From Guillardia theta CCMP2712 (Eukaryota; Protista; Cryptophyta), in the NCBI RefSeq assembly GCF_000315625.1, contig NW_005434477.1:1841-65840 (forward strand): a stretch of DNA of 64,000 bases. Direction: 5' to 3'. The notes beneath the pieces are model-generated. The model was not told the DNA's origin. It did not search any database and saw only the letters and a list, made by a program, of their open reading frames with translations. This document shows, one piece after another, positions 1,270 to 60,910 of this stretch. The number at the start of each line of letters is the position of its first letter. Position 1 is the stretch's first letter. The position numbers and the translations under genes were made by a program.

Positions 1270-2990
1270 GCCTTCGGCTAATATATACAAAGTATATACA
1301 ATAATGAGACGTTCCGACAGCAAGGGGTGGGTACTCAAGGGGAAACAACCACAGAGGTGGGTGAGTTGTAGCTGCACGGGTTATTTTAAGTGTATTCACA
1401 TGGGAAATAAGGGGGTAGGGGCTCACCTTGTTAACAACCGAGGGGTTATACAAAATAAACATTCAAGATCATGAGTCTGCCAGGGGTGGGTAGGGATTAT
1501 AACCAACCCTACCCCACCCCACAAAACTATTGTTTAACTTCCCGCCATAACCCTACCCTTCTTTATCCCTGTGAGTACCCACGATTATAGGAGATTCATC
1601 CGTCATGTACTAACCACCCCACCTACCCACCTCAATAAACATCGGCGTACGTTCCGAGCATATTTGTAAAGAATGTTCCGTATGGTCCACCGGGACCCCT
1701 CATGGTTATTACCCCACCCCTTCTAGATCACAGAAGTAGAAGTAATATGGACCGGTTGCTTGAAGTTGTGATGACCCCCATGACCCCAGCCGGTCTCCCC
1801 ACGAGCCGAGGGCATTCCCGCACCAGTTATGCCAAGGGATCACTGAAGTGTGTAGTCTGCGTCGGGGGTGGGGTGGGGGCGGAGGGGGTAGTCGGAGTCG
1901 GAGACCCGAGTCGGGGGTCACCTGCTATGGGGGTGTGGTAGGTCACCGAATTGTGGCTGGAAAAGGAGTAGAAGGGGGTGGTACTACCGTATGACTTATC
2001 ACGCAGGTGCGAGGATAAAAGGGGTGGACCTTGACCCGTACCTCAGCGGCTGGGGGGGGGTACCTGGTACCGCGGAGAGGAGGGAACCGGGGGGGTCGTA
2101 AAACAAAAAAGGAGTCTGGGGGTACGTAGGTAAAGCGGTCAGGTACGTGACGTCCGCCTCCTCCTTTCGGGCTGCCGCGACCGTTCGCGATCGCAACGAT
2201 CGCGAAGTTTACAAGAAGTTGACTTTGAGCCAGTAGTAAACTCAAAAAAAAAGACTCGGAAAAAGAAAACCTCTGTAGCAGTCAAACTTCGGGGCCGGGG
2301 CCCGGCCCCGCCGGCCGGGCGGGCACTGAGGACTTCAACGCGGCCACCGCCCCCAGCCGCTGCCAGCCTTGACTCCGGGCCGGCGGCCGTAATAACTAGT
2401 AACCTCGACTCTCCTGATTGTCCTCGTACTGATTTTTAACTTAACTTTGAGTAAAGGTGGTAACTTGCCCAGGCTTCGGTTCTGGGATAAGAGTCAAGGG
2501 AAAGTTTATGAGGACGGTCACCGCCGGGTGAAGCTCCGTGGCACAGCGGCAGGTGCCCAGTGGCTACGTCCGATCACACTCAGTGTGATTCGCCGCGGCG
2601 GCCCGATGGTCGGATGTGTATGCTCACTGTTCGCCTTCGGCGGGCCGGGCGGACGCCGTTAACCGCCGGTGCCAGTGGCAAAGGTCTCCGCCGCCTAGTA
2701 CCGTAGGCTAGCCCGGCCGCCCGGGGCCCGCGCCGGCAACCGGCGGCGCCGGCTACTGAGGCCGGCACTGTTCCGACGGTGAGGCAGTAAGTTCAACTGT
2801 CAGCGGCTGCCACCGCCGTGCGGCCTGTCGGGACTCTCAGAGTCTGACCCCGGGTGACCGTACGGCCCCGGCGCCGTACGGTACCGGGCCGGGTTCGACG
2901 TCTCCGATCTGATCGGACCGTACTACGGTACTGAGTCACTGCTGAGTCAGCCATTCAGAGTTCAGCCGGCTGTCGCGGTTACCACTGCCT
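1270..2990. promoter_or_regulatory. Composite intergenic island 1: GGGGTA/TACCCC zone (~1270-2130) plus GC palindrome core (~2290-2990), between divergent genes
   Basis: Dense ggggtgggta/ctaccccacccc words, then ccggccgg, ccgtacgg, ggtacc, tgagtca words; no credible ORF. Regulatory role is inferred from position. Confidence 0.5.
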
Positions 2991-3012
2991 TGAGAACTTC
3001 TGACGTCCCTCC

Positions 3013-4040
3013 ATGCATCCCCGCGGTCTTGTGCTGCTAGTCGCCATGGCAGGGATGGAAATCGGCACTGCCTCCTGCTCCTCTGCGATGAATCATGCGG
3101 TGAGGAAGACGATGATCGAAGGAAGGAGAGGTTTCAGGCATGCGGAGGACTCCTCCCTGCCCACATTGAGCATGTAAGAGAAATACCCACCATTCCCCGC
3201 CCCTCTCCCTGCCTCTGCCCCCACCTGCACAGCTGATTTGAATGATGCAGGCGGCCATCCATCCTAAATTTTGGGAGCATGAGCCCTGGGCGACTTAACC
3301 TGCGCGGAGGTACCAAGATGGTCACGTTTCCTTGATCAGCATGACGTTAAAGTCGACAGGGAGCAGCAAGAAACACGAAGAGCTGCGCGACCTGTTGGTC
3401 CGCATCCTGCCTCCCTTCTTGAGCGCCCCCAGCAAACCTCTCATCGCAACCATCATGCGGCTTCACAGTTTCGCCGCTGTGATAGGAGGAGCGACCATGT
3501 ACCTCATGGCGATCTTTGGGCAGCGACAACTGGGCATGCTAGAATACGACAGCTCGCACCCAGCTTGTGTCCACCTGGCAAGGCTGAGCGGCTTGTTCTA
3601 CTGTGCTCTCGGGGCGATGGAGTTTGTTGCGAGCGGAGAGGTCAAGGAGGAGAACGAGGTGGGCCATGTTGAGCAGCGTGCGAGCAGTGCGATAGGGCAC
3701 GTGTGCTGGATGAGACGCCATCTGTTCTCACGTACGCTCATCTCCATCATGTTGACTTGGGTACCTGCAGGTCACATTCGGGAAGGTGTTTGTAGGATAC
3801 CACGTACCCCTGGTTGTTCTCTTCCCGCCTCCTTCAATCCCCTTGATTTCCTCCTCCTCCTCCTGCGTTCCCACCGCCTCCTCTCCTTCCCCTCATGCTG
3901 CTCCTGCTCATTCCATGGAGCAGGTCTTGACCTACGTGCATGACATCATGCAGCTGCACACAGGACCAGCATACAACCTCGTCACCGTCATCCCTGCCTC
4001 TTTCCTGCTCCTTGGGCTCGTCGCGCTGAACTGCTGCTGA
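3013..4040 (+). CDS. Multi-exon hypothetical membrane protein with N-terminal signal-like segment and LRGG motif
   Basis: MHPRGLVLLVAMAG... start; RLNLRG|G joined through intron 3310-3359 to SSKKHEELRDLLVRILPPF; several hydrophobic segments; ends ...LLLGLVALNCC* at 4040. 5' exon phases not fully resolved. Confidence 0.5.
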
Positions 4041-4241
4041 CTTTCTACTTTCCCTTTCGCCCTCTGTACAGTAATCTTCCTCTCGTGTTTCATTAATGCA
4101 CACATGCATGAAAGCATTTGTTACCATTATGATGTCACGCAATGTTTGCCTACCAGGCCTATCCAACGTGTTCTATCGTATTATTTACACGGCCAATTCA
4201 GTCCATTCAACATCCTCATTGTGACAGCCGCTGATCTCCTG

Positions 4242-4676
4242 TCATGTAGGCGTTTCATACTTCATCAGAGATGTAAACTTCCTCCCTGCAGCTGCAGCCC
4301 TCCCGCAGACTCTCCTCCTCTCCTCCTCCGGATCCCGGGACTCCGGTCTCATCCACCAAAACAACGCAAGGACGTTGTCTCCGAAGATCGTCACGCCGAA
4401 CATCCAAGGGACCAGGAGGATCAGGATAGCGGCAACGACGGCGTCGTACACCAACGACTCTCCTGACACGCTGACGGCTGAGACGGCCTGGTTGTACCTG
4501 TGCTGCAATGTTTCCTTTGCCTCCCCCCTGCTCGAGATCCAGCGATGGATTTGAATGCAGACAAGCAGCCCCCCGAGAACGCACAGGCCGACAGCGATCA
4601 AGACGGCTCGCGCTAAGCTAAGGCACACAAGGATCTGCACCGCGCGCTGAATCCTCGAATCCTGCTGCATCATCAT
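4242..4676 (-). CDS. Hypothetical small membrane protein
   Basis: MMMQQDSRIQRAVQILVCLSLARAVLIAVGLCVLGGLLVCIQ...VVAAILILLVPWMFG... with 2-3 TM-like stretches; true start may be upstream. Confidence 0.45.
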   Translation of the reverse strand: MMMQQDSRIQRAVQILVCLSLARAVLIAVGLCVLGGLLVCIQIHRWISSRGEAKETLQHRYNQAVSAVSVSGESLVYDAVVAAILILLVPWMFGVTIFGDNVLALFWWMRPESRDPEEERRRVCGRAAAAGRKFTSLMKYETPT

Positions 4677-4714
4677 CGAGTTGTCGAAAGTTGGAGAGAG
4701 GAGGAGAGGGCGAG

Positions 4715-5095: not shown

Positions 5096-5604
5096 NNNNN
5101 NNNNNNNNNNNNNNNNNNNNNNNNNNNNNNNNNNNNNNNNNNNNNNNNNNNNNNNNNNNNNNNNNNNNNNNNNNNNNNNNNNNNNNNNNNNNNNNNNNNN
5201 NNNNNNNNNNNNNNNNNNNNNNNNNNNNNNNNNNNNNNNNNNNNNNNNNNNNNNNNNNNNNNNNNNNNNNNNNNNNNNNNNNNNNNNNNNNNNNNNNNNN
5301 NNNNNNNNNNNNNNNNNNNNNNNNNNNNNNNNNNNNNNNNNNNNNNNNNNNNNNNNNNNNNNNNNNNNNNNNNNNNNNNNNNNNNNNNNNNNNNNNNNNN
5401 NNNNNNNNNNNNNNNNNNNNNNNNNNNNNNNNNNNNNNNNNNNNNNNNNNNNNNNNNNNNNNNNNNNNNNNNNNNNNNNNNNNNNNNNNNNNNNNNNNNN
5501 NNNNNNNNNNNNNNNNNNNNNNNNNNNNNNNNNNNNNNNNNNNNNNNNNNNNNNNNNNNNNNNNNNNNNNNNNNNNNNNNNNNNNNNNNNNNNNNNNNNN
5601 NNNN
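5096..5604. other. Assembly gap (N run)
   Basis: Run of n. Confidence 1.
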
Positions 5605-6640
5605 GAGTACCGTATAGTGACGGTACGGTACGGGGTACGGTCACCCGGGGGCCGATAATGCCGGCAAGGAATCCAGCCTAGCCTAGTACTACGGTAGGTC
5701 TCAGTCTGACTCAGAGCCCGGGCCCCGCGGCGGCGGCCGCGCGCGTCGGGCGGCCCCGAGTCACCGGCGCCGTTGGTACCGTACCGTTGCCAGCCGCTAA
5801 GCCTGGCTAGGCCGCTGAGCGGCGGCCGGGCGGCAGTGCCGGGCGAAAGCTGCACTGCCACGATCTTGGGCCACCGTCAGGGCCGGGCAGCCAGGCGGCT
5901 CCGGCCGGGCCGCAGACCCAGCCTCCGACTCCGAGTCCCGAGTCCCGGCGGGCCCGGCCGGGCTGCCGCGCGGCGGCTGAGCCTGAGTGCCGTTTGAATC
6001 ATTGTGACTCAGTGAGTTGGACCCCGGCGGGCCGCCCCGGCGGCCGCGCTCACTGCCAGCCGCCTGAAGCGCTTAACTGAGCCGATTGACTGGACCGGTG
6101 GTGTAAATTTTACAGGGGTACTATATGGAACAACAATTAGTGGATAGGTAGGTAGGGTTCATCTTTATTTCATAGGGGTGGTTTTTTATGTGGGGTGGGT
6201 GTTGAAATTTCAAACAGTTTGAAGGCAAGGCTGAAACTTTCTTCGAGTCGACGTGGATCTCCTACCCCACCCACCATATTCATTGAGAAGAGACCCGGTA
6301 CTCTATTGATGTAATGGTACAAAACTCTGTAGTGAAGCTTTAGTTAATACTTGTGAAATCATTTCAGGTGAAAGATGAAAGTCACTACTCTGAAGAATCA
6401 AGTTCGCATTTTATCTTCAAATTTTATTTGTGAAAATTTCAAATATTCTCGGAAGCATCTGAATAATATTTGTAATGTTTGATCAATTTCAGATTTCGGG
6501 CATATATTTCAACTGTATCTCAAACGATGTTCACACACCTTGAGATTCAAATTTCATCATGAAATTTCAAATTCATCGAAAAAAAGAATCTGCATGCATG
6601 TTGACGGATGGAGGAATCGGAAGGGGGGTGGGCTCAGCAC
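5605..6640. promoter_or_regulatory. Composite intergenic island 2: GC palindrome core (5605-6100), GGGGTA zone (6110-6300), AT-rich TTCAA/TTGAA zone (6300-6600)
   Basis: gtaccgta/cggtacgg, ccggccgg, ccgagtcccgagtc words, then ggggta/ggtaggg words; upstream of Sec61 alpha and of the minus-strand gene. Confidence 0.5.
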
Positions 6641-7506: not shown

Positions 7507-9261
7507 ATGAGCAGCACCAAGGGAGGTAACGCCGCTGCTGTTCATGCTTCCTGGCCCTGTATGTGACCTGCCGTGCACAGTTCGCTTCCTCAGTCTTGTG
7601 AAGCCGTTCATGTTCATCCTCCCTGAGGTCACCTCTTCGCAGAAGAAGGTACGCTTCTCCATCCCTCCACCCCCCTCCCATCCCCCCGTGTCCCATATCA
7701 TCCCTCCTCGTCAACTGAACACCTCCTATTCCTCGTGTGTCCTTCGCTTCATTCTTCCTCCCTGACCCTCATCGCTTCAAGGTGCCCATCAAGGAGAAGA
7801 TCTTGTGGACCATGATCACGCTCTTCATCTACCTCGTCTGTTGCCAAATCCCCTGTACGGCATCTCAAACTCGAAATCGTCGGATCCTTTCTACTGGATG
7901 CGCGTTATCTTGGCATCGAACAAAGGGACGTTGATGGAGCTGGGTATCAGCCCGGTCGTCACCTCCGGCCTCATCATGCAGCTCCTTGCTGGCTCCAGGA
8001 TCATCGACGTTGACCAGGGAACCAAGGAGGACAAGACTCTGTTCCAGGGAGCCCAGAAGCTCCTCGGTATCCTCATCACCATCGTCGAGGCCGTGGCCTA
8101 CGTGCTCTCGGGCATGTACGGAGACGTCAGGGATCTCGGAGCCGGCAATGCCATCCTCCTCATCGCCCAGCTCTTCACTGCGGGTATCCTTGTGATCTGC
8201 CTGGATGAGCTCCTGCAGAAGGGGTACGGCCTTGGGTCGGCCATCTCGCTCTTCATCGCCACCAACGTCTGCGAGACGATCATCTGGAAGTCTTTCAGCC
8301 CAACCACCATCAACACAGGACGAGGAACCGAGTTCGAGGGCGCCCTGATCGCTCTGTTCCACCTGCTGGTGACGAAGCAGGACAAGGTCAGGGCCCTCCA
8401 GGAGGCGTTCTACCGCCAGAACCTGCCCAACGTGACCAACCTGTTGGCTACTGTGCTTGTCTTCGTCCTGGTCGTCTACTTCCAGGGGTTCAGGGTCGAG
8501 CTTCCTGTGAAGCACGCGAAGCAGAAGAGCGGGCAGGGGAGCTATCCCATCAAGCTGTTCTACACCAGCAACATCCCCATCATCCTCCAGACTGCCTTGG
8601 TCTCCAACTTGTACTTCATCTCTCAGATCCTGTACAAGAGGTACCCGGAGAACATCTTCATCCACCTTCTCGGACGCTGGGAGGAGCCGGAGATGTCCAT
8701 GTCGGGGCAGATGAGGCCTGTCGGCGGTCTCGCTTACTACGTATCCCCTCCCAACAGCTTCACGGACATTCTCTCGGATCCCTTTCACGCCATCTTCTAC
8801 ATCGTCTTCATCCTCACTGCCTGCGCTCTGTTCTCCAGGACCTGGATCCATGTTTCCGGCTCCTCGGCCTCGGACGTGTCGAAGCAGCTCAGGGACCAGC
8901 AGATGGTGATGATGGGACATCGATCCGGCTCCATGCAGAAGCTCCTCAACCGCTACATCCCCACCGCCGCTGCCTTCGGTGGCATGTGCATCGGTGCTCT
9001 GACCATCATCGCCGACTTCATGGGTGAGGAGGAGGAGGAGAGAAGGGGTGAAGAGCGTGTTGATGTCGACTTGTTGATGTTGATGTTGATGTTGAGGAGG
9101 AAGATGAGAAAGTATGTGTCAGCAGTTGTTGACATGATGGTGCAGGTGCTATCGGCTCGGGAACTGGAATTCTTCTGGCAGTGACGACCATCTACTCTGT
9201 GTATGAGACTGTCGTTAAGGAGAGCAGCGAGTTGGGATCTCTCAATCTCCTCCGCTTTTGA
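7507..9261 (+). CDS. SEC61A: Protein transport protein Sec61 subunit alpha (introns ~7526-7580, 7649-7781, 9024-9145; apparent 1-nt frameshift near 7851)
   Basis: Diagnostic peptides [132 protein letters not shown]. Confidence 0.97.
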
Positions 9262-9521
9262 GTTTGTAAATCAATCAAACAAGTCAGTCAGTCAGCATGT
9301 CTCGTTCAACATCCCTCGCTGCTTTCCTCCTCTCTCGCTCGCTCGTTCCCTCTCTCACACACACACTCTCTCTTTCACTCCCTGTCGCTCTCTGATTTCT
9401 CTATTACCACCTCTCCCTCTTCCTGGATCATTCAGTTTCATTTTCCTCCTCTTCCTACATGGAAAGAATTCGTTTCATGGATGTCTGTCAGTTTTTATGT
9501 TTCTGTACATGCGGGAAAACT

Positions 9522-12341
9522 TTACATGAGGCCGAAGCCTTCGGCGTTGTTGATGGCCGTCATGAGACATCGCCGAAGTCCCGTCTGCCGAAACTCTGCA
9601 CCCTCCCCTTTTTTTTTTTTTCTTTTTTTTCTTTTTNNNNNNNNNNNNNNNNNNNNNNNNNNNNNNNNNNNNNNNNNNNNNNNNNNNNNNNNNNNNNNNN
9701 NNNNNNNNNNNNNNNNNNNNNNNNNNNNNNNNNNNNNNNNNNNNNNNNNNNNNNNNNNNNNNNNNNNNNNNNNNNNNNNNNNNNNNNNNNNNNNNNNNNN
9801 NNNNNNNNNNNNNNNNNNNNNNNNNNNNNNNNNNNNNNNNNNNNNNNNNNNNNNNNNNNNNNNNNNNNNNNNNNNNNNNNNNNNNNNNNNNNNNNNNNNN
9901 NNNNNNNNNNNNNNNNNNNNNNNNNNNNNNNNNNNNNNNNNNNNNNNNNNNNNNNNNNNNNNNNNNNNNNNNNNNNNNNNNNNNNNNNNNNNNNNNNNNN
10001 NNNNNNNNNNNNNNNNNNNNNNNNNNNNNNNNNNNNNNNNNNNNNNNNNNNNNNNNNNNNNNNNNNNNNNNNNNNNNNNNNNNNNNNNNNNNNNNNNNNN
10101 NNNNNNNNNNNNNNNNNNNNNNNNNNNNNNNNNNNNNNNNNNNNNNNNNNNNNNNNNNNNNNNNNNNNNNNNNNNNNNNNNNNNNNNNNNNNNNNNNNNN
10201 NNNNNNNNNNNNNNNNNNNNNNNNNNNNNNNNNNNNNNNNNNNNNNNNNNNNNNNNNNNNNNNNNNNNNNNNNNNNNNNNNNNNNNNNNNNNNNNNNNNN
10301 NNNNNNNNNNNNNNNNNNNNNNNNNNNNNNNNNNNNNNNNNNNNNNNNNNNNNNNNNNNNNNNNNNNNNNNNNNNNNNNNNNNNNNNNNNNNNNNNNNNN
10401 NNNNNNNNNNNNNNNNNNNNNNNNNNNNNNNNNNNNNNNNNNNNNNNNNNNNNNNNNNNNNNNNNNNNNNNNNNNNNNNNNNNNNNNNNNNNNNNNNNNN
10501 NNNNNTCCTCCTCCTCCTCCTCCTCCTCCTCCTCCCTCCCTCCTCCTCCTCCTCCTCCTCACCCGGCTTCAGCTCGTGCGTCTTCATCACTCCAAACTCC
10601 TCATAATCCACTACAAATGAGCGAGCAAAAACTTCCTCCACGTCCCCGTCGAAGTCCAACAGGCTCTGGAGACCACGGGCGAGGCCCGGATTGCAGTCCT
10701 TGAGGTCGAGCAGGCAGGGCTGAAACCCCATCAGCTTCTTGTACACGACCATGGGGAAGTGAACATCGAGGATGACGCTGTTGTAGATTGCGAGGCCGAA
10801 GACTTTCCCTATCAGGTTGAACTCCCTCGCATTCTCCAGGGCCGTGGCAGAGAACCAGAAAGTCCGGCTATCGTCATCGTAGGTGAACATGCCGTAGTTG
10901 AGGTCGAACATTTGCCGGACGATGAGCTGGAAGAATTCCTTCTGGACGCCCCCCTCATCGATTCCTTCCTCCCCCTTGAACACGACCTTGAGCGGCTTCT
11001 TCAAGAACGTCTCGTTCCCGTCCTGCTGCGCAGAGATCTGAACGAGCGTATCCCTGATCAAGTTCTCCCTCCTCACCTTGAGGATGAGGTAGGGGCACTC
11101 GTTCCCTCCGAAGATGCTGCGGAACAGCGCGGACCTGATCTGCGTCCTCATCTGGTTGTTGGCGTCCAGCTGGAGAAGCTTCGACTTAGTGGAGGGGTCG
11201 AGGACGAAGGGATGGTCGCAGAAGGAGAAGGGACAACGCTGAGTGTCCTTCCATCTCGCAAAGTCCTCCGTGAAGTCGACGAGCTCGTTGATCGCGTCGT
11301 TGTAGAACTCCTTGTACGAGACCCTTGTCCTGCTCTGGTTGCTGCCCCACAGGATCTTAAGGACCTTGGTGGCAGACGCGACGTGGTCATCGATGCAACG
11401 GAACTCGTTCACATAGATGGTGATGAACTGTTGGAAGGCAACGACGATCTCGCGGAACGCCTCCTCCTCCACCTCCTCCAGCCATCGCTGCAGGATGTCT
11501 CGGTGGTCCTGCTTCAGCTGATTGACGGAGCTGCAAACCTTCTTGAAGATGCTGTTGTAGAACTCCGGCTCCATCAGGCCCGGCCAGAGGAGGAGGACGA
11601 CGAACATCCGCAGGTGCTCCAGCTTGTTGCTCGTCCCCGTACCAGCAGGCGGGGCGCCAGCTTGCTCAGAAGCCCCTCGAACGCCAACGCTACCATGTCG
11701 TTGACGATGCTGTCGGTCAGAGCACCCTCTCCATTCACCATGGCTATGGGCTTCCGGCACTTTGCCATGGCGGCGAAGGCCTCGCTAACCGCATCGAAGT
11801 CGATGCCCGAGCTCTCCTCGTTGGCCCTGCATGGCCGCCCGTTCTTGAGGAAGCTCCAGCTCGCCGACTCCGAGCTAGACAGGCACCTCTTGATCGCGTC
11901 TGCAAGCTCCAGCTGCGTGCTCACGTTGGACTCAGCAGACGTTGCTGCCTGCAAGAGCTTCTTGAGGGGCACAAGCTCAGCTGAGGTAGAGCTGGCCTCC
12001 GTCCACTGCAGGCTCTCCGGGATGGTCACGGCAGCTCCAGCACACAGGAAGTGGGTCGTGCTCTGCGCGAGCTTCACGGCCAGGAGGGCGGCCGAGGTGG
12101 GGTCGAGCCGGGGCCCTTCAGGGCAGGAGAAGCAGTTCCTGTTGGTGCAGTAGACGGTACCGCACCCCATGGTGATCTGATTGAAGTAGCTGTAGATTAG
12201 ACTCCTGCATGAGTCGTAGTCCGGGCTCGGCGTGTAGGACGGCAGGGCGTCTCTCCCTCCTCCTCCTTCAGCAGCTTCCCCGTGCAGAGATGAGCGCTCC
12301 TCACTGCCTGCTACCTGCATCCTCTCCCTCGACCCGTTCAT
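9522..12341 (-). CDS. UBE3A/E6AP-like HECT E3 ubiquitin ligase with N-terminal AZUL zinc finger; interrupted by assembly gap; apparent frameshift near 11652
   Basis: AZUL-like LIYSYFNQITMGCGTVYCTNRNCFSC; EFYNDAIN, FSFCDHPFVL, LKKPLKVVFKGEEGIDEGGVQKEFFQL, GLAIYNSVILDVHFP; terminal exon LMTAINNAEGFGLM* at 9522 on the far side of the gap. Confidence 0.92.
9637..10505. other. Assembly gap (N run) within the HECT gene, flanked by poly-T and (TCC)n
   Basis: Run of n. Confidence 1.
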
Positions 12342-13409
12342 GTGCTCGTCGCCTCCTTTGGAGGCGCTGGGCGCCCCTGCCCCTGCGACTGGGTCAATCG
12401 CAATGCATCACATCCGACACGTCGACTTCTCTCACCGTTGTGACTCGCAGCATGCGATCCCTGGAGAGGACTCGACGACGACTCTAGCCCTCGTTCCTCA
12501 TTGTCGTCTCTGCACATGTCGTCTTTCTTGTCCATGATACCACCTCCCAGACAAGGGCGGGGCCTTGGCTGCGGTTACAAACCTCGGAGCTCCCCTCTAC
12601 ACCTTCACAAGGCCATGGGGTTTCTTCTCTGATGAGCCCCTTCCAACAAGTCGAGAGGGCTTCTACCTGCACGAAACATGAGAACTTCACCGAGGCCACC
12701 TGCTGGTTCAGCGTTTGTCTTTCCAACTTTCCTTGCAGCAAGCACGCTTGCTCAAGCACCCACATACATCAGCTCCTTCAGCTACATGCTCGATCTCCCT
12801 ATCTTCACATCTCATCGCAGAACCTACTTCTGACCATCTCCTCGCACCAGCGCGCCAATTCGCACGGCCAAGCGGATGCTGCATCTACAATGTTCTATCC
12901 AACGAAGGGAGTAGGAGAGCTGTCAAGGTTCAAGAAAGGTGTGAGACAAGAAGAAAGAAAGCTGGATGGGAGGGTAAGGCGGAGTTTTCTTGATAGCTGA
13001 AGAGCCGAGGTCAACCTCCATCCTATTGCTCACTTTATCCTTGTCCGCTTTCATCCCCCACCCCCACCCCTCCCACCTCTCTCTGTCTCTTGTTCTCCTG
13101 CACACAGAATATAGCTTATCAGCTCTTCTCATCTCAATGCGCAATCGCTGTCAGCATCCTCCATCCTCCATTGAAGCGTCCTCACTTCCAGGAAACCTGA
13201 TACGGCCGTCTCGCTTCGATTTTCACTTTATCTCGCTCCCTTCCCTTCTTCCTCTGCGCGTGCCATGGCTTCATCGTCGTCATGCTCGCCGCTTCTACTG
13301 GGCATGTTTGCATCCTCTCATCGAGTCTGTCCCTCCCCTCCCCTTCCTCCTCCTCCCTCCTTCTTTCCCTGTCTCCTCCCCTAGTGTCTGCATAGAAGGC
13401 GATCGATAA

Positions 13410-16120: not shown

Positions 16121-16463
16121 TGCTCCGCCGCCCGCCTCAGAGATCGATATCTAATTTCTTGACTCGGGATTAAGGGGTCTTAATTTCCTAATTCTGCTCG
16201 ATAATTCAGATCACGGCCGCCCGGTTTCAGTTTAAAAGAATCTTTTTAAAAGTCACGGAACCACCACGACGGTCACGTGGCCCTCGATAGAATCTGCTGT
16301 ACTCTCCAACAGTAGTACTGTTTCTGCGACGAAGCATCTGCGGCGCTCAACACTCTGGCAGGCAAGCATGGACGAGTAAGTCGACGCGCCGGTACGGGCA
16401 TGTCATGTCACGTGTGTCGGACGTTTCATTCCAACGAAACAAATAAAGTATGAATAAAGTATG

Positions 16464-35538: not shown

Positions 35539-39292
<3,754 letters not shown>

Positions 39293-40210: not shown

Positions 40211-40311
40211 TTTCACAAGTTTGAGGAGCGAACTGGTAGCAACTCAAATTCAAAAGTAGAGGGCAGGCTTTAAATTCAGGTATAGCCGACTATTCAAGTT
40301 CGGTACCGACC

Positions 40312-48800: not shown

Positions 48801-51800
48801 TTGTCGCTGCATTGAATAACACAGATGGGTTTTGGCTAGACCCTGCAGTCATTTCTTCAGAATCAGAAGCATCTGGAGTGAGGCAGCCAAGGATGATGAT
48901 GCAGGCGCTTAGATTGAAGTTCCAGAGGAGCGCGAGGGGCGCATCTTCTCTCAAGGATTATGCCAATCCGGTTGTAATTGACCCTTCTGCAAGTGTATCT
49001 GCCATCCATGACTTCCTGTGGCCAAAAGTTCGATCAAGAAACAGCGATGGTATGCTTGTGTCAAGTAGATTTCTTGGCTTGGATGCCGGTGAGACTGTTC
49101 GCGCTTCTGCAAGCACCAGGAGAAGCTTAGATGATGAGAGTCAATCTGAAGCAGTTTCGAGACAATCGGCTCAGGCTTCTGAATCAGCGAGTGCGTCTGC
49201 TACCAGAGCAAGCCGAACGAGGCGAGACGTGGCAAAAAGCTCGAATCCTGCCCCGAGGGCGAGGGAGAGTAACAGCTCTCGAGCTTCAAGAGAGACTGCG
49301 AGTACTTCACGTGGAGATGAATCATTGCAATATCTACAGAGTTACTTCGCAGGTTCGAATTCAACTGACCTTGGCCTAGAGTCTTCGATGAATGCCATGA
49401 GTGATGGAGAAGGAGAAGGTGACGCTGAAGGAGATGAGATGGAGCTAGAGAACGTGGTGAGGGCGACCTTATTCGGTGAAGAGGGCATGGATGATGAAGA
49501 TGTGTTCGAGGGAGAGATGGAGGAGGATATCCTACTTGATGACAGCATGGAAGATCCTGTGGAAGAGAACCAGATGGAAGTTCTAGACATCCACGTCTCC
49601 AACTCATCCAACCCACAGCCAAATCAATCCAGTGCTGCGGTTGATCAATCGAGGGAATCCCAGTCTGCCTCGCGGTCGTCCAGGTCAGGTCGTACCAACA
49701 GTCAGCGACAGACGGAATCCGTATCAAGCAGGGAGCCACCAGCCAGTCATTCTTCAGAACCACCAGCAGCAGCTGACTTGGAAGCAGCATCGAGATTGAA
49801 TGTAAACAACAGGCCAGGGGGAGCTACAAGCGGACCATTCTTGCGCCTGGCCGTTGGTGGAATCGAGCTGGCAAACCATGACATGTCAATTCTTGAGGCA
49901 GTTTTGCAGTCATTGAGCACTTCCAAGTCCCAGACTTCTTTGCAGGAAGTGCAGATTTCACTCTGGAACCGGATACATGTTATCGAATATGCGCTACAAG
50001 GCAACGAGAGGTCGAGATGGAAGTCAATGAAGCAGCCAAATTCAGGAATATTAGGCCTGGACGTCACCCAACAAAGCACACTGGTCACGGTGAGGACTTG
50101 TTGTCATAATTGTTCCTTTCTCATATTTGACTCGAGCAGTCGAGGGCTTGGTCGCTTCTGGATACCTCTATTAGTGCGAATCGCTTCTCAGATGATAAGG
50201 GGATCCCGGAGACAACCAAGGCGATGCTGCGCTTGATCACTATGCTCTTCACCATTAACTCGGACCTCCCACTGACTGACCCGTGAGGAAGATTGTTTCT
50301 CGTGCCGTTGTGATGTGACTCTGTCTGCCAGGCGGCGAGTGAAGCCGAACGAGATGATTGTGGGTAACTTGTCGTTCAAGGCATCGCTGATGGTACGAGA
50401 TCCCCTGCTCCCCTATATCCACAAAGTTCCTCAATGGATCAAAGTGCTGCTGGTGGATTATCCATTCCTCCTTGGGCATGACGTGCGGCAAACGTACTTC
50501 GACCACGAGGCTTTCGGTGTTCTATCAGTTCTTCGAAGCTTGTCTCGACACGACGGTAGAGAGCGGCATCCTGGACAATCTCGTCCACGTCAGAAGGTGA
50601 TGTCAATGTCTTTTCTGGATTTCTGATCTAGACAAGCTGCTTTATCCAGCTGCTGTACCTTCCTGCCATTTGACGTTTGATGTTTGGCTCAGGTGAGAGT
50701 TGGCCGCAAGCACATCTTGGAATCCGCCAAGAGAGTCATGGAGGTTTTCAACCAACACAACATTCCTCAAGGGTCTTCCTTGGAGATCGAGTTCTCTGGA
50801 GAAGTTGGGACTGGAAAGGGCCCGACACAAGAATTTTTCACTTATTTTTGCCGGTGAGCCTATCGAACCGATGATGATGGTCACGTTTGACTGTGCGCTT
50901 TCAGGGAGGTGCAACTGAGATCGCTCGGCTTGTGGTGGGACTCGACGAACTCTGACGCGACTCACTTCTGTCCGGCCAACGGTCTCTTTCCTGCACCTCT
51001 GAACCCTCTGGCGTCCGAGGCTGACCGCACAAAGAAGTTGGAGGCATTCGAGGTAAATCGAGTTTACTTGCCTTTGTTGCAATCTGGTGCTGTTGGCATG
51101 ACCGATCTTTGACAATTCACTCAAGGTCATTGGATGGATTTGCGCAAAGGCGATTCATGATGGGCGGCTACTGGATCTCCCGATCTCTGGTCCCTTCAGC
51201 CGAGTTCTTCTTGGGCACCCGTTGGAGGAAGGCGACTTGAAACTCCTCGCTCCTGAGGTGACGTGAACATTAAGGAAGAAATGCCTGTCCTGACAGCTAG
51301 CAGATCTATGAGAACTGGAAGCGCTTCAAGGCGATTGCCGACGAGAAAAAGAGGATCGAAAGCGACAATTCATTAACAGCTGAGGATAAGGTGAATGCGA
51401 AGGCTCTCTGGTTGTTTGTCGCAACTGACATCGACTTGTAATTACAGGCTGCAAGAATCAAGGCTCTCACTGTAGATGGTGCAGCCCTCGAGGATCTCTC
51501 GATCGTCTTCACCGTCCCAGGCTATGACATGCCTTTGAAGTGATTGATCTCCCAGGAAGTAAAATCAACGCTGACCAAGTCTCAGGACCAACGGGGAGAA
51601 CGAAGTTGTTAGTCTTGAAAATGTGGAGGAGTACGTGCGGCTGCTGCCTCAAGTATGTTGGAGACCCGAGGCCATTGCAATCTCACCTTGAGCGGCAGAT
51701 CATCCTAGTTGATGGGGTTCAGCCTCTCTTCGACAGCTTCCGGAAGGGCTTCAGGTACGAGGACAGACATCTTGGACTGCGAAGCTGAACTGCTGGCTAG

Positions 51801-52885: not shown

Positions 52886-54901
<2,016 letters not shown>

Positions 54902-55331
54902 ATTTGTATGGCTCTTTTGGGGATCAGAGGGGAGATGTAACGATGAAACTCATTCTTGCAGGATCCTGAAGCAATATATGTCAGTCTCTATCTCCTCTCT
55001 CCCCTGTCCCATTCCTCTGTTTGTTTCCTCTCCCCTTGTTATCCTTTCTTGTTCTGGTCTCCCCCTCTCTCCTCCTTTGATCAATCGTTTCCTCGCCTCC
55101 TCTGTCCTCCTCTGTCCTCCTCTCCTCTCCTCTCCTCTCCTCTCCGTCTCTCATTTTGCTGCATTTTTTTCCCGCCAAGGGAGTAAAACTCTGCAAACAA
55201 TAAAAAAATCTTGTAAAACCTCGAAGTTTTTCGCTGTAAAGGATAAAAAACATTTGAGTCTCCCCGACCGTCGGACACACTCACCGGGTCGATTTTGTAG
55301 GAAAGAAACTTCAGTGACTTGGTTCAAGTCA

Positions 55332-55469
<138 letters not shown>

Positions 55470-55626
55470 GGAACTCGGAGGGAGCAATCAGTCGTGCCGT
55501 GTCGATTCATAGTTGTCATGAAGAGGTCCGCGGGCTCATTGCAGCATTCCAACAAGACAAGATTAATTTAATCTGATTAACATTGAGGTTCATACTTCAT
55601 ATTCACATTATGTTAGAAGAGACTTG

Positions 55627-58600
55627 CTAGGAGGTTCTGTCTTCGGTGATGATCACGTGCAAAGTATGCGACGACTTCCTACGCGCCTCCTCCATCGTCG
55701 CCGCCTCTACCTTGGCGTCTTCACCGGCGTGCGCCACTCGCATCCCCTGCTTTCGCTTCCTCGACATGGTTGAAATGGCCCCGAAGAGCTTTGTGGCATC
55801 TCCAACGAGGCTGACGAGGATCATGGGGGCGATCGAGACGATGAGGAAGGTGACGTACAAGTTGTTGAGACCTGCTGTTTCAATCCTCCCAAACGACGAG
55901 AGCAGGAATGAGAGGCAGATCCCCATGTTGCCTGTCGCTGCAGCGATGTGCGACAGCCATGCCAGCCGGTCGATCTGAGGGGAGAAGAGGAGGAGCAAGA
56001 TGAGATCGACGGCCATGAAGACTGACATGCTCAGGGTCCTCAGAATGTCGGTGAAGGCAAGCAAAGAAGTAGCCAACGAGTACACGATCCGCATGCCAAC
56101 GGAGTACAAGCCATACCACCAGGCATGCTTGCAGACTTCTTCCAACAACACCCCGAATCGCTTCATGTACAGCCATGACTCCAAGTGCCGCTCCGCCGCC
56201 TCGTCGACAGTCCACTCGCCTCGCGCAAACAAGGTGCTCATAGAAGCAGCAGCAGCGAACAGAGAAGTCGCTGACGCTTGCTTCACCGCAGTCTTCGCTT
56301 CACTCAAGGCTTGCTTCTGGGTTCTCTCTTTCCACAGGATCTTCGAATCATACCCGCACGTGAAGTAGGTCATGAAGGTGAACTCTGCCAGCACTGCCAG
56401 CAGGGCGACATATCCAAACACAACGTAGACGGTACATCCGCTAGTCATCGCCAGAGCAGCCGCAAGTGACAGCCCTTGAATCTGAGTGATGGCAACTGGC
56501 AGCTCCCAGGAGAGGAAGGGAGTGGTCAGGACCTCTTCGTCTGACCTGATTCTCTTCCAGAGCACGTACAAGTAGCTCAGGTGGACGCGGAAAAGAGCTG
56601 AGAACAGCAAGGACAGGAGGCAAGCAACGAAGGTAGACAGCAGCTCGTTGTCAGACCTCATAGCGTTGCCGCAGCTGCCCTCCTCCTTGACGTCAGGGAA
56701 GAAGGAGAAGAAGTAGTAGTTGGACCAGCGCAGGCCCCCTGCCAGCGACGTGATCTCCTCAGTCCGAGCTCCTCCTGCGATAAGATCGCTCATCGCTATG
56801 AACTGAGTCTGCAGGATCAGAGAGAGGGCGAGGGAGGCGCTTCGACCAGTCGACGCAGAAGAAGTCGCCGAGGTGGTTGCTGATGTTGATGCTGACACAG
56901 ACGCTGATGCTGTTGCCCCGCTTACTGACGACAGGGCAGGAAGGGCAGTCGACACCATGGCACTTGTCACGATCGACGTGGTTGCCATGACAGTAGAGGT
57001 TGTGATCACCTTTGTGACAACAGAAACTGTCTCGGGAGTCAACGACGAGTTACTCGCCCTGGTTGGTAGTGGAGTTGTTGTAGCAGCAACGGGCCGTTGG
57101 GTCTGAGGAGGAGGAGGAGGAGGAGTTGTGATGACCCTTGACGATACAGCCGTATGAGCTGCAGGGACTGAGACAGGTGTCATGACCTTTGACGCGGTCG
57201 AGACAACAGATCCCGTCTGAGAGCCATACGGCAGATTGCTGGTTGTTGGCGACGCAACAGTCGTTACATGGGCAACAAGTGAAGGAGTCTGAGTAGTTGT
57301 GATAACCCTGGTTATAGTCGAAGTTGATCGTGCAGAAATAGTAGACGTTGCAGCTGATGCTTCAACCGTTGTCGAACTTGTGGGAGGTTTTGTAGAAATA
57401 GTTGATGTTGTAGACGTGGAGAGAGGAGTGGTGGAAGGTTGTAGTGAAGTATGTTCAGTTGACATCTGTTCGTCTATCATTGCATTTGTTAGATTCCTCA
57501 GCTCGTTCGAACACTCCGGCAGCGTCTCATCTACATAACCATACAGCAAGAAATGTCCCACAACGTTTCCATGCGCAAATCGCTGGTCTGTGAACCCTGC
57601 AAGCACCTCGCCCACCTCGAAACTCCAGGTTGCATTGTAGCAAGGCAACGAGTGACCTCGAAGCAAGATGGTCGTGTAAGGAGAAATTCCTAGTTGCGAT
57701 GAGATTGACGCTACAGGGTTGTCGTAGAGGTCAAGAAATTCAAGGAACATTGAGACGCCGTTGAAACTTCCGTCTTGAAGGTTGACAATCCTGTTGTTTG
57801 AAAGATCCAGTTCGTTCAAGTTTGATAGACCATAGAACGCTCCTGTTGCGATGTTTGCGATCTGGTTGCCTGACAAGTCCAGCATGTTCAAGTGTGCCAT
57901 GTGAAGGAAGGCTCCTGCTGGGACGCTTGTGATGCGGTCGTTGATGATGTAGAGCTCGATCAGCTGTGACAAGTTGCTGATTGACGTGGCTGGCACCTCG
58001 GTCAGCCGGTTGTCAATGAGATACAACTCCTCCAAGTTTGAAAGCCCGTCAAAAGTTCCTGCTGGCAGATCTTGAAGCTGATTGTGCGCGATCCACAGGA
58101 CCTGCAAGGACGAGAGCCTGCTGAACATGCCTGGATGTACTGAGAGTTGGTCAAAGTTGTACAGATACAAGTTGGTCAACTGCGTCAGCTCGGTCAGGAC
58201 GCATCCGGTCAACGTTGTATCGTCATCCCCGACAGACTTGTACAGGTAGAGCGCTTTCAGTGCCTGAAGCCTCTCGAGGTTCTGGTGGCAGAGAGGCCTG
58301 AGAACCTCCGAGTCCGTTCCAAGGCCAACCAAGCTCGTCATGTTCAAGGTCTCGATCTGCACGCTTGTCAGCAGGTTGTGCTCGAGCAGAAGGATCTGAA
58401 TGCTGACGAGGCCCTGGAAGGCTCCCGCAGAGACCTCAATGAGCAGGTTGTTGCTGAGGGACAAGAACTTGAGGTGTGTGAGCGATTGAAAGCCATGGAC
58501 TGGAAGGGTTGTGATGAAATTGTTGTCCAACGACAGGGAGGACAAGGCAGATAGATCAGCAAAACAATCAACCGGCAGCACTGAGAACTTGTTGTTGGAG

Positions 58601-59496
58601 AGGTCCAACGAGTCCATCATGAAAAGCCCTTGAAATGCTCCCGAAGGAAGGGTAGACAAGTGGTTGTCATAGAGGTCCAACGTCTGTAGGGTCTGCAGCC
58701 CTTGGAAAGCTCCAGAGGAGATGCTTGTCAGCTGATTGCTGCAGATGCTGAGACGAAATAAGTAAGTCAGGCCATGGAAGGCTCCTGCAGCAAGAGATGA
58801 CAAACGATTGTTGTGCAGCGTCAGCCATTCCAACCTAGAAAGATCATCGAAGACGCTTGACGAGATATTGACAAGTTGATTGTTCTCAAGAAACAAAAAG
58901 TAAAGGCCCTCGAGACCTTTGAATGTGCCTGGAGATAATTCGGCCATGAGATTGTGTTCAAGACAAACAAAACCTACGCTTGAAAGGTTGCTGAAGGAAT
59001 TGTCCGGAAGACGCTCAAGCTGATTGTCTGATAGGCCTAGATACCACAGGCTCGAGAGGCCTCGGAAGATCGTCTCGGGGATGCTGGTCAACTCATTCTC
59101 GTCGAGGTGAAGATACAGCAAACTTGAGAGGCCTGTAAAGATGGTCGCCGGGAGGCTCGCAATCTGGTTTCCTCGGAGATCCATTGTTTGCAAGTTGATG
59201 AGACTGTGAAATTCTCCCCCTTGAAAACTTGTGAGGTAGTTGTATGCGAGAGACAGCTGTCGCAAGCTAATTGTATCTTGGAATACCGCTGGTGAGATAC
59301 TTCGAATCCCTCGGAATCTCAAATCGAGAGAGCTACAGTTGGTCGCGCAGCTCCCGGTCTTGGTCAACTCCCCTCTGTCTGATACCAAGAACAAGCATCC
59401 GCCACAGGGATAGCTCTGACTTGCAGCACACGTGAAATGCGTCAGCAAGATTCCGAGCAGACTAGACAAAACCGAGTGTGAAGCACCCTTGCACAT
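55627..59496 (-). CDS. Intronless cell-surface LRR protein: signal peptide, ~20 LRRs, Thr/Ser mucin-like stalk, multi-pass TM domain (1289 aa)
   Basis: Repeated LxxLxLxxNxLxxLPxxxFxGL units; T/S/P-rich stalk; QFIAM...LRWSN followed by about 7 hydrophobic helices. Confidence 0.93.
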   Translation of the reverse strand: MCKGASHSVLSSLLGILLTHFTCAASQSYPCGGCLFLVSDRGELTKTGSCATNCSSLDLRFRGIRSISPAVFQDTISLRQLSLAYNYLTSFQGGEFHSLINLQTMDLRGNQIASLPATIFTGLSSLLYLHLDENELTSIPETIFRGLSSLWYLGLSDNQLERLPDNSFSNLSSVGFVCLEHNLMAELSPGTFKGLEGLYFLFLENNQLVNISSSVFDDLSRLEWLTLHNNRLSSLAAGAFHGLTYLFRLSICSNQLTSISSGAFQGLQTLQTLDLYDNHLSTLPSGAFQGLFMMDSLDLSNNKFSVLPVDCFADLSALSSLSLDNNFITTLPVHGFQSLTHLKFLSLSNNLLIEVSAGAFQGLVSIQILLLEHNLLTSVQIETLNMTSLVGLGTDSEVLRPLCHQNLERLQALKALYLYKSVGDDDTTLTGCVLTELTQLTNLYLYNFDQLSVHPGMFSRLSSLQVLWIAHNQLQDLPAGTFDGLSNLEELYLIDNRLTEVPATSISNLSQLIELYIINDRITSVPAGAFLHMAHLNMLDLSGNQIANIATGAFYGLSNLNELDLSNNRIVNLQDGSFNGVSMFLEFLDLYDNPVASISSQLGISPYTTILLRGHSLPCYNATWSFEVGEVLAGFTDQRFAHGNVVGHFLLYGYVDETLPECSNELRNLTNAMIDEQMSTEHTSLQPSTTPLSTSTTSTISTKPPTSSTTVEASAATSTISARSTSTITRVITTTQTPSLVAHVTTVASPTTSNLPYGSQTGSVVSTASKVMTPVSVPAAHTAVSSRVITTPPPPPPQTQRPVAATTTPLPTRASNSSLTPETVSVVTKVITTSTVMATTSIVTSAMVSTALPALSSVSGATASASVSASTSATTSATSSASTGRSASLALSLILQTQFIAMSDLIAGGARTEEITSLAGGLRWSNYYFFSFFPDVKEEGSCGNAMRSDNELLSTFVACLLSLLFSALFRVHLSYLYVLWKRIRSDEEVLTTPFLSWELPVAITQIQGLSLAAALAMTSGCTVYVVFGYVALLAVLAEFTFMTYFTCGYDSKILWKERTQKQALSEAKTAVKQASATSLFAAAASMSTLFARGEWTVDEAAERHLESWLYMKRFGVLLEEVCKHAWWYGLYSVGMRIVYSLATSLLAFTDILRTLSMSVFMAVDLILLLLFSPQIDRLAWLSHIAAATGNMGICLSFLLSSFGRIETAGLNNLYVTFLIVSIAPMILVSLVGDATKLFGAISTMSRKRKQGMRVAHAGEDAKVEAATMEEARRKSSHTLHVIITEDRTS

Positions 59497-59569
59497 TGTT
59501 GTCTTATCCTCTGAAACGCCTCAAGGCGCTGTATCTTGACACGCTGTGCATGTAGACAGCGAGAGAAGT

Positions 59570-59961
59570 CGAAGGAGAGGAGAAGAAAGGTGTCGGGAAG
59601 GAGAGGGAGAAGAAAGGTGTCGGGAAGGAGAGGGAGAAGGAAGGTGTCGGGAAGGAGAAGGAGAAGGAAGGTGTTGGGAAGGAGAGGGAGAAGGAAGGTG
59701 TTGGGAAGGAGAAGGAGAAGGATGGTGTCGGGAAGGAGAGGGAGAAGGAAGGTGTCGGGAAGGAGAAGGAGAAGGATGGTGTCGGGAAGGAGAAGGAGAA
59801 GGAAGGTGTCGGGAAGGAGAAGGAGAAGGAAGGTTCCGGGAAGACAGAGAGGGAGAAGGAAGGTGTCGGGAAGACAGAGAAGGGGAAGGAAGGTGTCGGG
59901 AAGACAGAGAGGGAGAAGGAAGGTGTTGGGAAGGAGAGGGAGAAGGAAGGTGTTGGGAAGG
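59570..59961. repeat. Purine-rich minisatellite, ~27-bp unit (with 33-bp variants), about 14 copies
   Basis: Unit gaaggaaggtgtcgggaaggagaggga with variants such as ...gggaagacagagagggag... Confidence 0.9.
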
Positions 59962-60019
59962 AGCACGAGTGTTTGTGTTACAAGTCCCTCACGTCACGCC
60001 TTTGCTCACCAGGCGCAAG

Positions 60020-60910
60020 GAGTACCCCACCCCCACAAGCCTCCGGGTCTAGTACCCCACCAGATTTCTTATCGTCAACTTAGGGTCGATGTGACCCCTG
60101 GTAGAGTACCCCTCAATAACCCCCTGCCACCCGGCCCGTGACAAAAAATGACCGTGAAGTTTACACCTCCAATGGTTGACTAGGCCTGACCCCTTCAAGG
60201 AGTTCGGCGACTCGAACTTGCTCGGGCCCGGGCCCGGGCCACCGTCGGTCAGGCCGGGCCGGCTTCCACCGTGATTCAATGATGCGGTAGCCCCGCAGCA
60301 CGGTACCGTGACTACGGTATGCCGCTAAGTTAGTTAGTACTAGTATCTTTGAGTAAAGAACTTCGCCGCGCCCGCGCCGCACCGTGGCAGGCGATTTGGC
60401 CCGGCACTGAGAGCCCGGCGCCCGGTTGAAGAGAAAAAACCGTGCGGCCCGGGCCCTGTGAGCGAACCACTCACTGCTCCGAGCGGCTAAGTTCAATCGG
60501 ATCCGATGAACCCGGGCGGCCCGCCGGGCGGCGGCCGGGCCCGACCCCCCGGCCCGGGGAGCCCGGCCCGGGGCTGGCCGGGCATCGTACCACTCAGTGT
60601 CCCGGCGATGCGGCGCTGACCCATGTCATCATAGACGGTACCCACCCCTCCTTCAAACACCAACCACCCCTAGCTGTCATACCCTTGCCGTAGTGAATTG
60701 ATGGGGTGCTGTGAAGTCCATAATCGCTACACCTCCTACCCCTACCCTATAAGTCACTACCCCTATACCTACCTTCTAAAGCACCCCATCCGCCCCACTG
60801 GTCCTGTCTCACGAAGTCCACCCCACCATGTCTACTAGAAGTTTAACATCGCTACACCCCTCAAGTAAAAAGTTTGAGGACTGAGGTGGTAGGGGTAGTG
60901 ACCCCCAGTT
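60020..60910. promoter_or_regulatory. Composite intergenic island 9: TACCCC zone, GC palindrome core (60170-60620), TACCCC zone
   Basis: gtacccc words flank gggcccgggcccgggcc, cacggtaccgtg, tagtacta; upstream of the LRR gene. Confidence 0.5.

Follow-up and report, generated by a model that had tools for sequence, protein, structure and literature searches.

Introduction

CpG islands of the vertebrate type are GC-rich stretches of approximately 0.3–1 kb, in which CpG is found at expectation within a CpG-depleted genome; they are located at the 5' ends of genes, often between divergent genes, at a fraction of promoters, and are mutually unalignable, with short GC words in common. All these features are found again in the GC-rich part of a composite intergenic element, which is described here for the cryptophyte Guillardia theta CCMP2712 in a stretch of 64,000 nucleotides (JH993161.1:1841–65840, assembly GCA_000315625.1; hereafter referred to as the window). 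A total of nine such islands, 0.5–1.7 kb in length, are present in the window, in which two sequence classes are joined or occur singly, a GC core with CCGG/GGCC-type words and a zone of YACCCC/GGGGTR words. On the evidence of composition, position and recurrence, the islands look like an undescribed, lineage-specific architecture of promoter regions. The G. theta core differs from the vertebrate-type CpG island by its CCGG/GGCC/CGGC doublets, the under-representation of CGCG and of G4/C4 runs, a twofold hairpin excess, GTAC-type words and the attached YACCCC zone. The CpG island may nevertheless be regarded as the best-supported analogy for the GC core with respect to formal criteria, position, optionality and unalignability.

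Replication origins provide another comparison. The AT-rich origin islands of fission yeast (Schizosaccharomyces pombe) favour divergent promoters, and metazoan origins carry G-rich repeated elements beside CpG islands. The G. theta islands are alike in being intergenic and 0.5–1 kb long, in preferring promoter-containing gaps over convergent ones and in joining an oriented G-rich element to a CpG-island-like sequence, but differ in composition and are much denser along the chromosome. The YACCCC zone recalls the sites of yeast Rap1, Reb1 and Tbf1 and the plant telo-box, which likewise consist of short, telomere-like, C-rich sites (CCCCTA and CACCC types) recurring in unique flanking sequence on the upstream side of genes; the zone is different in having 5–30 sites over at most 1.3 kb, a constant orientation within blocks and an extreme skew. 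The divergent strand-switch regions of trypanosomatids are similar in that G/C-run-rich sequence is located at divergent starts in a protist with spliced-leader trans-splicing, but G. theta has specific 6–10-mers instead of plain G runs, and its islands are also found in tandem gaps. Unlike those of trypanosomatids, the genes of G. theta are not organized in long polycistrons (PMC5619915). Finally, the cryptophyte Baffinella frigidus carries miniature inverted-repeat transposable elements (MITEs) and telomere-like arrays, which are intergenic, palindromic and include the words GGGGTACC, CCCTA and CCCCTA; the Baffinella MITEs form multi-copy families that can be aligned and the arrays are genuine tandem repeats, whereas the G. 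theta islands belong to neither kind and show no profile homology to them.

Results

Nine islands of two sequence classes

An earlier note on this DNA had proposed about nine intergenic islands with a common word vocabulary. ACCCC/GGGGT words and CCGG/GGCC-type words are indeed concentrated in these islands: TACCCCACCC was observed 9 times in the window against 0.10 expected and CCGGGCCG 19 times against 1.31, in both cases exclusively inside islands; AGTACCC (19 copies) and ACCCCTA (18 copies) were never found outside; and many 7–8-mers occurred 10–20 times within the 9.9 kb of islands and not once in the remaining 52.6 kb. Since the islands had been defined by such words, these counts are circular, and an unsupervised test was therefore performed by K-means clustering of strand-symmetric 4-mer frequencies in 400-bp windows. 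Two special clusters were obtained, coincident with all nine islands and absent elsewhere in the window, so that exactly the same nine were recovered. The two clusters, corresponding to the YACCCC/GGGGTR zone and the GC core, were adjacent in seven of the nine islands. A third, AT-rich zone with TTCAA/TTGAA words, which the note had assigned to some islands, was detected only in islands 2 and 5 and fell in the cluster of ordinary AT-rich sequence, and is thus no component of the islands. The features are located as follows (positions within the window, no strand assigned).

1270–2140: YACCCC zone of island 1 (word maps and cluster), with polar blocks of G-words (1300–1500), C-words (1500–1810) and G-words (1820–2140)
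2140–2990: GC core of island 1, ending shortly before a putative plus-strand ATG at ~3014
5605–6100: GC core of island 2, left edge cut by the assembly gap 5096–5604
6100–6320: short YACCCC zone of island 2, ~1.2 kb upstream of the Sec61 ATG (7507)
13390–13800: YACCCC zone of island 3, C-words on the plus strand
13790–14300: GC core of island 3, in the tandem gap between the 5' end of HECT (minus strand, 12535) and the 3' end of cyclophilin (minus strand, 14986)
17780–18950: YACCCC zone of island 4, one polar block of 1.1 kb
18950–19200: GC core of island 4, 64 bp upstream of the ADH coding sequence (CDS) start (plus strand, 19264), in a divergent gap with the cyclin 5' end (minus strand, 17344)
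23150–23360: short YACCCC zone of island 5
23590–24060: GC core of island 5, followed by a TATA-like run at ~24125 and an annotated CDS start (plus strand, 24179)
34050–35350: island 6, YACCCC zone only, without GC core
39690–40210: island 7, GC core only, ~100 bp upstream of an annotated CDS start (plus strand, 40312)
43780–45000: island 8, with a mini GC patch (43780–43810), G-words (43860–44140) and C-words (44150–45000), in the divergent gap between FKBP (minus strand) and TRIP12/HECT (plus strand)
60000–61000: island 9, with C-words (60000–60140), GC core (60130–60640) and C-words (60590–61000), in the divergent gap between LRR (minus strand) and ANTH (plus strand)

The GC core

The GC cores (seven cores) are 250–850 bp long with 67% GC, all dinucleotides being near expectation and the observed/expected ratio (o/e) of CpG being 1.04. 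Outside the islands, CpG o/e was 0.70, TG/CA 1.15 and TpA 0.43. The cores fall within the formal definition of a CpG island (Gardiner-Garden and Frommer type: length ≥200 bp, G+C ≥50%, CpG o/e ≥0.6) and stand out from the CpG-depleted bulk, even though the bulk depletion is only moderate. The remark in the note that it knew of no name for such islands thus holds only in part. No earlier description of the islands or of G. theta nuclear promoters was found in the searchable literature. Nothing was found in the literature searched on DNA methylation or nuclear telomere repeats of G. theta. Among other dinucleotides, GA/TC and AG/CT were enriched outside the islands (1.2–1.4), and TpA was ~1.0 in both island classes.

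The words CCGG, CGGC, GGCC and GCCG were approximately twofold over-represented in the cores, while CGCG, GCGC, GGGG and CCCC were under-represented, and short runs composed of G and C only, (GGCCC)n and (GGGCCC)n, were observed, for example (GGCCC)3. Words of mixed composition also recurred across the cores and were more frequent there than outside, as seen for ACGGTAC (16 versus 3), CACTGAG/CTCAGTG (11 versus 2) and CTAGTAC (5 versus 0). In both island classes the density of GTAC was 4.5-fold that of the remaining sequence, and GTAC-type words were present at island density in the short, island-free promoter at 16120–16464.

Hairpins with arms of at least 6 bp numbered 52 in the cores against 9.0 expected from dinucleotide shuffles. 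When composition was preserved locally by shuffling within 10–40-bp windows, the expected number increased to 18–30 (z 3.4–7.5), indicating that approximately half of the palindrome density is due to G/C-only patches and that an approximately twofold excess is real. The folding z-scores of two cores were −3.4 and −5.0 relative to shuffles.

The YACCCC zone

The YACCCC zones are 150–1300 bp long with 50% GC and a CpG o/e of 0.54. When the blocks were oriented, C amounted to 35.6% and G to 15.1%, giving a C/G skew of 0.40, and no A/T skew was detected. The consensus of the repeated site is (C)(C)YACCCC, often doubled at an offset of 5–6 bp, and its main forms of ~10 bp are TACCCCACCC, ACCCCTACCC and AGTACCCC. 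The sites are separated by unique sequence at a median spacing of ~36 bp, and neither motif periodicity nor nucleosome phasing was detected in the zones beyond the 5–6-bp doublets. Identical 10-mers were found in five to eight separate islands, their flanks being unrelated; in length and behaviour they thus match a binding site.

The sites are oriented in runs, with 22 switches of orientation against 40.3 ± 3.7 expected, a value reached by none of 5000 shuffles. No consistent relation was seen between the direction of a run and the location of the core or of the neighbouring genes. A model with a fixed block orientation relative to core or genes, as for an R-loop, the termination of promoter upstream transcripts (PROMPTs) or an outron, was rejected, because approximately five blocks fit and three do not, and the informative tandem case (island 3) contradicts it. 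In the YACCCC zones no hairpin excess was detected (folding z −1.3 versus shuffles for one zone), and canonical G-quadruplex (G4) motifs, defined as four G3+ (or C3+) runs with short loops and examined as a test for G-quadruplex or i-motif clusters, were as dense in CT-rich sequence of genes as in the zones or denser. A 16-nt perfect palindrome, GGGGTACTAGTACCCC, at 44331–44346 in island 8 unites the zone motif in its two orientations, a head-to-head arrangement that is seldom seen otherwise.

Location of islands relative to genes

The position of islands was counted with GenBank gene models on three G. theta scaffolds totalling ~106 kb, or ~0.1% of the genome: the window, L019 (JH993026.1) and L021 (JH992965.1), the latter two chosen via cyclin paralogues. 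Within the window the gene models used cover 5.5–27 kb and 37–62.5 kb, and island 6 is located outside both. The gaps with an island were as follows.

Window: divergent 4/4 (islands 4, 5, 8 and 9); tandem 1/3 (island 3, upstream of HECT); convergent 0/5
L019, JH993026.1: divergent 1/1 (zone 20000–20500, junction 19603/20726); tandem 1/2 (core 11251–11500, upstream of the gene at 11886); convergent 0/1
L021, JH992965.1: divergent 1/5 (full island 7536–10001); tandem none; convergent 0/5

Altogether, islands were found in 6 of 10 divergent, 2 of 5 tandem and 0 of 11 convergent gaps, or 8 of the 15 gaps that contain a 5' end against none of the convergent ones (Fisher p ~0.004), a contrast that partly reflects where extra DNA is tolerated, because the convergent gaps are only 19–500 bp long. 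The avoidance of convergent junctions that had been reported for the window thus extends to all 11 annotated cases. The proposed division into six islands between divergent genes and three upstream of minus-strand genes could be checked only for islands 3, 4, 5, 7, 8 and 9; of these, island 7 precedes a plus-strand gene. Islands 2 and 7 are both located upstream of plus-strand genes (Sec61 and the gene at 40312, respectively). The core ends 60–120 bp from the annotated or evident starts at 19264, 24179 and 40312, and in islands 5 and 7 the core is separated from the ATG by a TATA-like run. The cyclophilin (16120–16464) and Rad9-like (53793–55627) genes have no island on their 5' sides.

A 6-mer classifier trained on the window only was applied to L019 and L021, and four further island regions were identified, all in gaps containing a 5' end. 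On L019, a core (8001–8250) with a zone (8250–9450) is located upstream of a cyclin gene, of which the left neighbour is unannotated. On L021, few or no island words were present in the four other divergent gaps of 385–1028 bp, and one weak core-like bin of 200 bp and one C-rich stretch, probably intronic, were also noted.

Lack of homology between islands and the conserved element E

The view that the islands have no long alignable sequence in common and represent no transposon was upheld. By all-vs-all blastn of the nine islands, only matches of 15–58 bp were obtained (58 bp at 74%), and 8-mers shared between islands chained equally well in both orientations, without collinear chains even between cores. 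Copies alignable over the length of an element, terminal inverted repeats (TIRs) with target-site duplication, or coding capacity, as expected for transposable elements (TEs) or MITEs, were not found on the sampled scaffolds. Tandem Repeats Finder (TRF) detected no array within the islands save one 44-bp stretch, in contrast to what tandem repeats, satellites or interstitial telomeric sequences would give. No Pfam domain was found in island ORFs, no match to Rfam or tRNA models in the islands at gathering thresholds, and no copy of the published G. theta spliced-leader (SL) sequence (PMC5619915) in the window. Two sub-threshold miRNA-family matches at 29558–29715 (E 0.00075 and 0.005), in low-complexity CT/GA sequence outside the islands, are most likely due to chance.

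Among the 13 islands on the three scaffolds, the sole alignable piece is a segment of 41–54 nt shared by three cores, here called element E. Its copies in the window, complete or reduced to the 3'-terminal 12-mer, are as follows.

2403–2456, plus strand: element E, ~55 nt, ending in CTTTGAGTAAAG, in the core of island 1, with 94–98% identity to the L021 and L019 copies
23557–23568, plus strand: exact copy of CTTTGAGTAAAG, island 5
60347–60358, plus strand: exact copy of CTTTGAGTAAAG, island 9

Element E is 94% identical over 54 nt to L021 8326–8379 and 97.6% identical over 41 nt to L019 8208–8248 on the opposite strand; the edges of the alignment are sharp, with no similarity beyond. In the window the 12-mer CTTTGAGTAAAG has three exact copies and no more, always on the plus strand and in cores. 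On L019, where E sequence was noted at 8121–8148, 8208–8248 and 8302–8318, a second, partial copy faces the first, leading to inverted arms of 28 nt; conservation extends past these arms, and no target-site duplication was seen. In the window no inverted (TIR) partner for E was found. The three full copies in ~106 kb would correspond to a number of the order of a thousand genome-wide.

Within element E, a U run with purines on either side precedes a mini-hairpin, which resembles the layout of the 3' parts of SL or small nuclear RNAs (snRNAs). The element may represent a module of the promoter, a unit giving rise to a small RNA or a mobile sequence of short length. Its identification as a spliced-leader gene was considered and set aside as a lead only: the layout is similar (CTCG start, GT, purine-flanked U run), but E and the published SL are different in sequence, and the would-be exon is variable among the copies. 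A search of viral contigs gave one match to E at chance level.

Comparison with other cryptophytes

Three metagenomic relatives with 82% nucleotide identity in the Sec61 exon were compared, one of which retains the Sec61–HECT synteny. Application of the window-trained classifier to these relatives flagged one GC-rich patch, upstream of Sec61 in L001. A metagenome scan with the ADH protein gave only two distant loci (60%), both without the island grammar. The syntenic relative is represented by six independent assemblies (L009–L014), all of which end 1.2–1.4 kb upstream of Sec61; in L009, the contig that was read through, the end is a (TA)n run.

In B. frigidus (L020, MU646427.1; 7550–8400 and 4280–13420), degenerate interstitial telomere-like arrays of (CCCTAAA/CCCCTAA)n and at least three alignable MITE-like families were identified. 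One of these families is a palindromic element of ~125 bp, the termini of which begin with GGGGTACC, words that are enriched in G. theta. Searches of the G. theta sequence with nhmmer profiles of the Baffinella families gave no matches, and the words common to Baffinella MITEs and G. theta islands may be taken as a lead, not as evidence of common descent. The second cyclin paralogue of L020 is an inverted duplicate of 1.28 kb (1708–2969 versus 9996–11245, 81%).

The island grammar, proposed to be genome-wide and to be sought in other cryptophytes, thus recurs on the two additional G. theta scaffolds, but it is not universal at gene starts (8/15) and is absent at the sampled loci of relatives. 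Since approximately half of the 5' gaps are island-free and the relatives lack the grammar, it is, as far as this sampling indicates, lineage-specific and optional.

Assembly gaps and gene models in the window

The window agrees with locus L017 at 25501 of 25501 bases, and its 976-aa ORF at 47306–50233 is 98% identical to GUITHDRAFT_148240 of G. theta CCMP2712; the DNA is thus not a human contig. For a fast-evolving neighbouring gene, the protein identity to Hanusia phi was 79%. The nearest named relatives of the Sec61-alpha ORF (7805–9184) are those of Hemiselmis (89%), Baffinella (86%) and Rhodomonas (85%). The gap 5096–5604 is bordered on the left by a (CTCCTG)n microsatellite and directly on the right by the GC core of island 2, of which the left edge is therefore cut; hairpin-rich GC sequence is a plausible cause of this gap. 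Next to the gap 9637–10505 there are a T run on one side and a (TCC)n run on the other, and both flanks match the minus-strand HECT gene of the syntenic relative (L009) with order and strand kept, indicating that this gap is within the gene body and outside the islands. Its length may be underestimated, because the two anchors are ~1 kb apart in the window but ~2.5 kb apart in the relative. To the left of this gap is the convergent junction of Sec61 and HECT (9261 to ~9515), which has no island.

Several gene models are evidently truncated, and for two long ORFs of the window the GenBank models differ from the ORFs. An uninterrupted LRR ORF of 1289 aa is present at 55627–59496 on the minus strand, for which the GenBank model covers 58366–59496 and 377 aa only; a homology search with this ORF gave generic LRR proteins only and no G. 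theta locus. Between the LRR coding start and island 9, a purine-rich minisatellite (59571–59963) has 14 copies of a 27-bp unit with 92% matches. The 5' part of TRIP12/HECT (ORFs 45297–47060) is split off as a separate model of 107 aa, and the HECT/AZUL gene (10587–12535) is truncated by a gap. To the left of island 7, an ATG-started ORF of 247 aa (38549–39292, minus strand) has no GenBank model, the interval from 37035 to 40311 being without any annotated gene. Microsatellites rich in GA/CT abound across the genic parts of the window.

Discussion

We tentatively favour, at less than even confidence, the reading that the islands are a functional promoter architecture, in which a CpG-island-like initiation platform is combined with a homotypic array of the ~10-bp site. 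The islands would then be promoter-side intergenic spacers made of two lineage-specific kinds of non-repetitive, "cryptically simple" DNA. The GC core would be free of methylation and poor in nucleosomes and would act as the platform for transcription of one flanking gene or of both, and the YACCCC zone would bind a sequence-specific factor, possibly a "general regulatory factor" of the C2H2 zinc-finger or Myb kind, which is predicted to set the upstream boundary or the activating region. In its favour are the position of the islands (8 of 15 gaps with a 5' end against none of 11 convergent ones), the closeness of cores to start codons, the CpG-island character of the core, the site-like 10-mers, the lack of periodicity, tandem structure and copy homology, the GTAC-type words of the island-free promoter at 16120–16464 and the recovery of islands on L019 and L021 by the window-trained classifier. 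The sequence itself shows the composition and position of the islands, their recurrence on other scaffolds and their lack of mutual homology; transcription initiation, methylation state and protein binding are inferred.

Three sets of observations weigh against this reading. Approximately half of the 5'-containing gaps are island-free, including four of the five divergent gaps on L021 (385–1028 bp), and since many 5' gaps function in this state, an island is not necessary for a promoter. The regions upstream of Sec61 in the three metagenomic relatives are compact and contain neither YACCCC zones nor CCGGGCC-type cores. The YACCCC sites are oriented in blocks with a C/G skew of 0.40, following no rule with respect to core or genes; this is not required of a set of binding sites and is more reminiscent of polar insertions or expansions. 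A simple binding-site model does not account for such randomly oriented polar blocks, and a non-adaptive or mobile origin therefore has to be kept in view.

The main rival, to which we give somewhat less weight, is a non-adaptive origin. Slippage, short-tract conversion or small mobile units would have given rise to lineage-specific simple DNA, which in this compact genome would accumulate upstream of genes, where it is tolerated, and the restriction to 5' sides would reflect this tolerance, the convergent gaps being too short to hold an island. The optional occurrence of islands, the lack of islands in relatives, the randomly oriented polar blocks with sharp edges and the microsatellite-like GC runs, (GGCCC)3 and (GGGCCC)n, are all in line with such an origin, and so are the multi-copy state of element E at 94–98% identity, the 28-nt inverted arms on L019, which resemble a small MITE, and the Baffinella intergenic DNA, full of alignable MITEs with GGGGTACC termini. 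However, most islands contain the same 10-mers within unrelated flanks, rather than motifs of their own; the strong C/G skew should decay in neutral DNA; and the cores abut start codons at a regular distance. Since the 13 islands, from 0.1% of the genome, share a single alignable piece of 41–54 nt, a mosaic of TEs would have to draw on thousands of families, each with only a few dozen copies, which is implausible.

A more elaborate form of the functional reading, which we regard as rather unlikely, is that the bipartite islands are a hitherto unrecognized, actively maintained chromatin module of cryptophyte nuclei. The hairpin-forming core would carry element E, possibly a small-RNA or initiation unit, and the adjacent polar array of TACCCCACCC-type sites would be written or homogenized by a dedicated sequence-specific system; the role of these sites might be that of an insulator or an origin, or they might confer directionality on trans-spliced genes.

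The probability is lower still that the islands are replication origins or modules of origin plus promoter. The order divergent > tandem > convergent agrees with that of origin-associated islands in other organisms, oriented arrays of G-rich motifs stand beside CpG-island-like cores, and the hairpin-rich cores could extrude cruciforms; on the other hand, the island spacing of 4–10 kb is far denser than the usual origin spacing, the skew switches within zones in both senses, and the zones hold no concentration of canonical G4 motifs. We give the same low weight to a local mutational or epigenetic footprint, by which the cores would escape cytosine methylation, transcription-coupled bias and codon constraint, while the zones would result from strand-asymmetric repair or R-loops. 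The near-expectation dinucleotides of the core, as against the genic values (CG 0.70, TA 0.43, TG/CA 1.15), and the extreme C/G skew of the zones without A/T skew would be accounted for, but such a bias does not create specific 10-mers in many islands or a conserved element of 55 nt, and the direction of the skew is unrelated to flanking genes or cores.

It is very improbable that the islands are old, decayed copies of one promoter-targeting transposon or MITE family, despite their 5'-end location and sharp edges, element E, the palindrome-rich cores and the GGGGTACC-terminated MITEs of Baffinella, because no alignment above 58 bp and no collinear chain of anchors was found among the nine islands, no island ORF has a Pfam domain, E has no TIR partner in the window, the Baffinella profiles have no match in G. 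theta, and same-orientation runs of motifs contradict the expectation for TIR pairs.

Guillardia theta provides the reference genome of cryptophytes. If the islands mark transcription starts, as the promoter reading predicts, promoters could be located and classified from sequence alone, the 5' ends of gene models, several of which are visibly truncated in this window, could be corrected with their guidance, and regulatory DNA for transformation vectors could be picked on this basis. The ~10-bp YACCCC-type site and the 55-nt element E are testable candidates for the site of a cryptophyte regulatory factor and for a small conserved unit, respectively. If the islands are instead non-adaptive, they would represent, for a compact genome, a clean case of lineage-specific simple DNA that is confined to the 5' flanks of genes.

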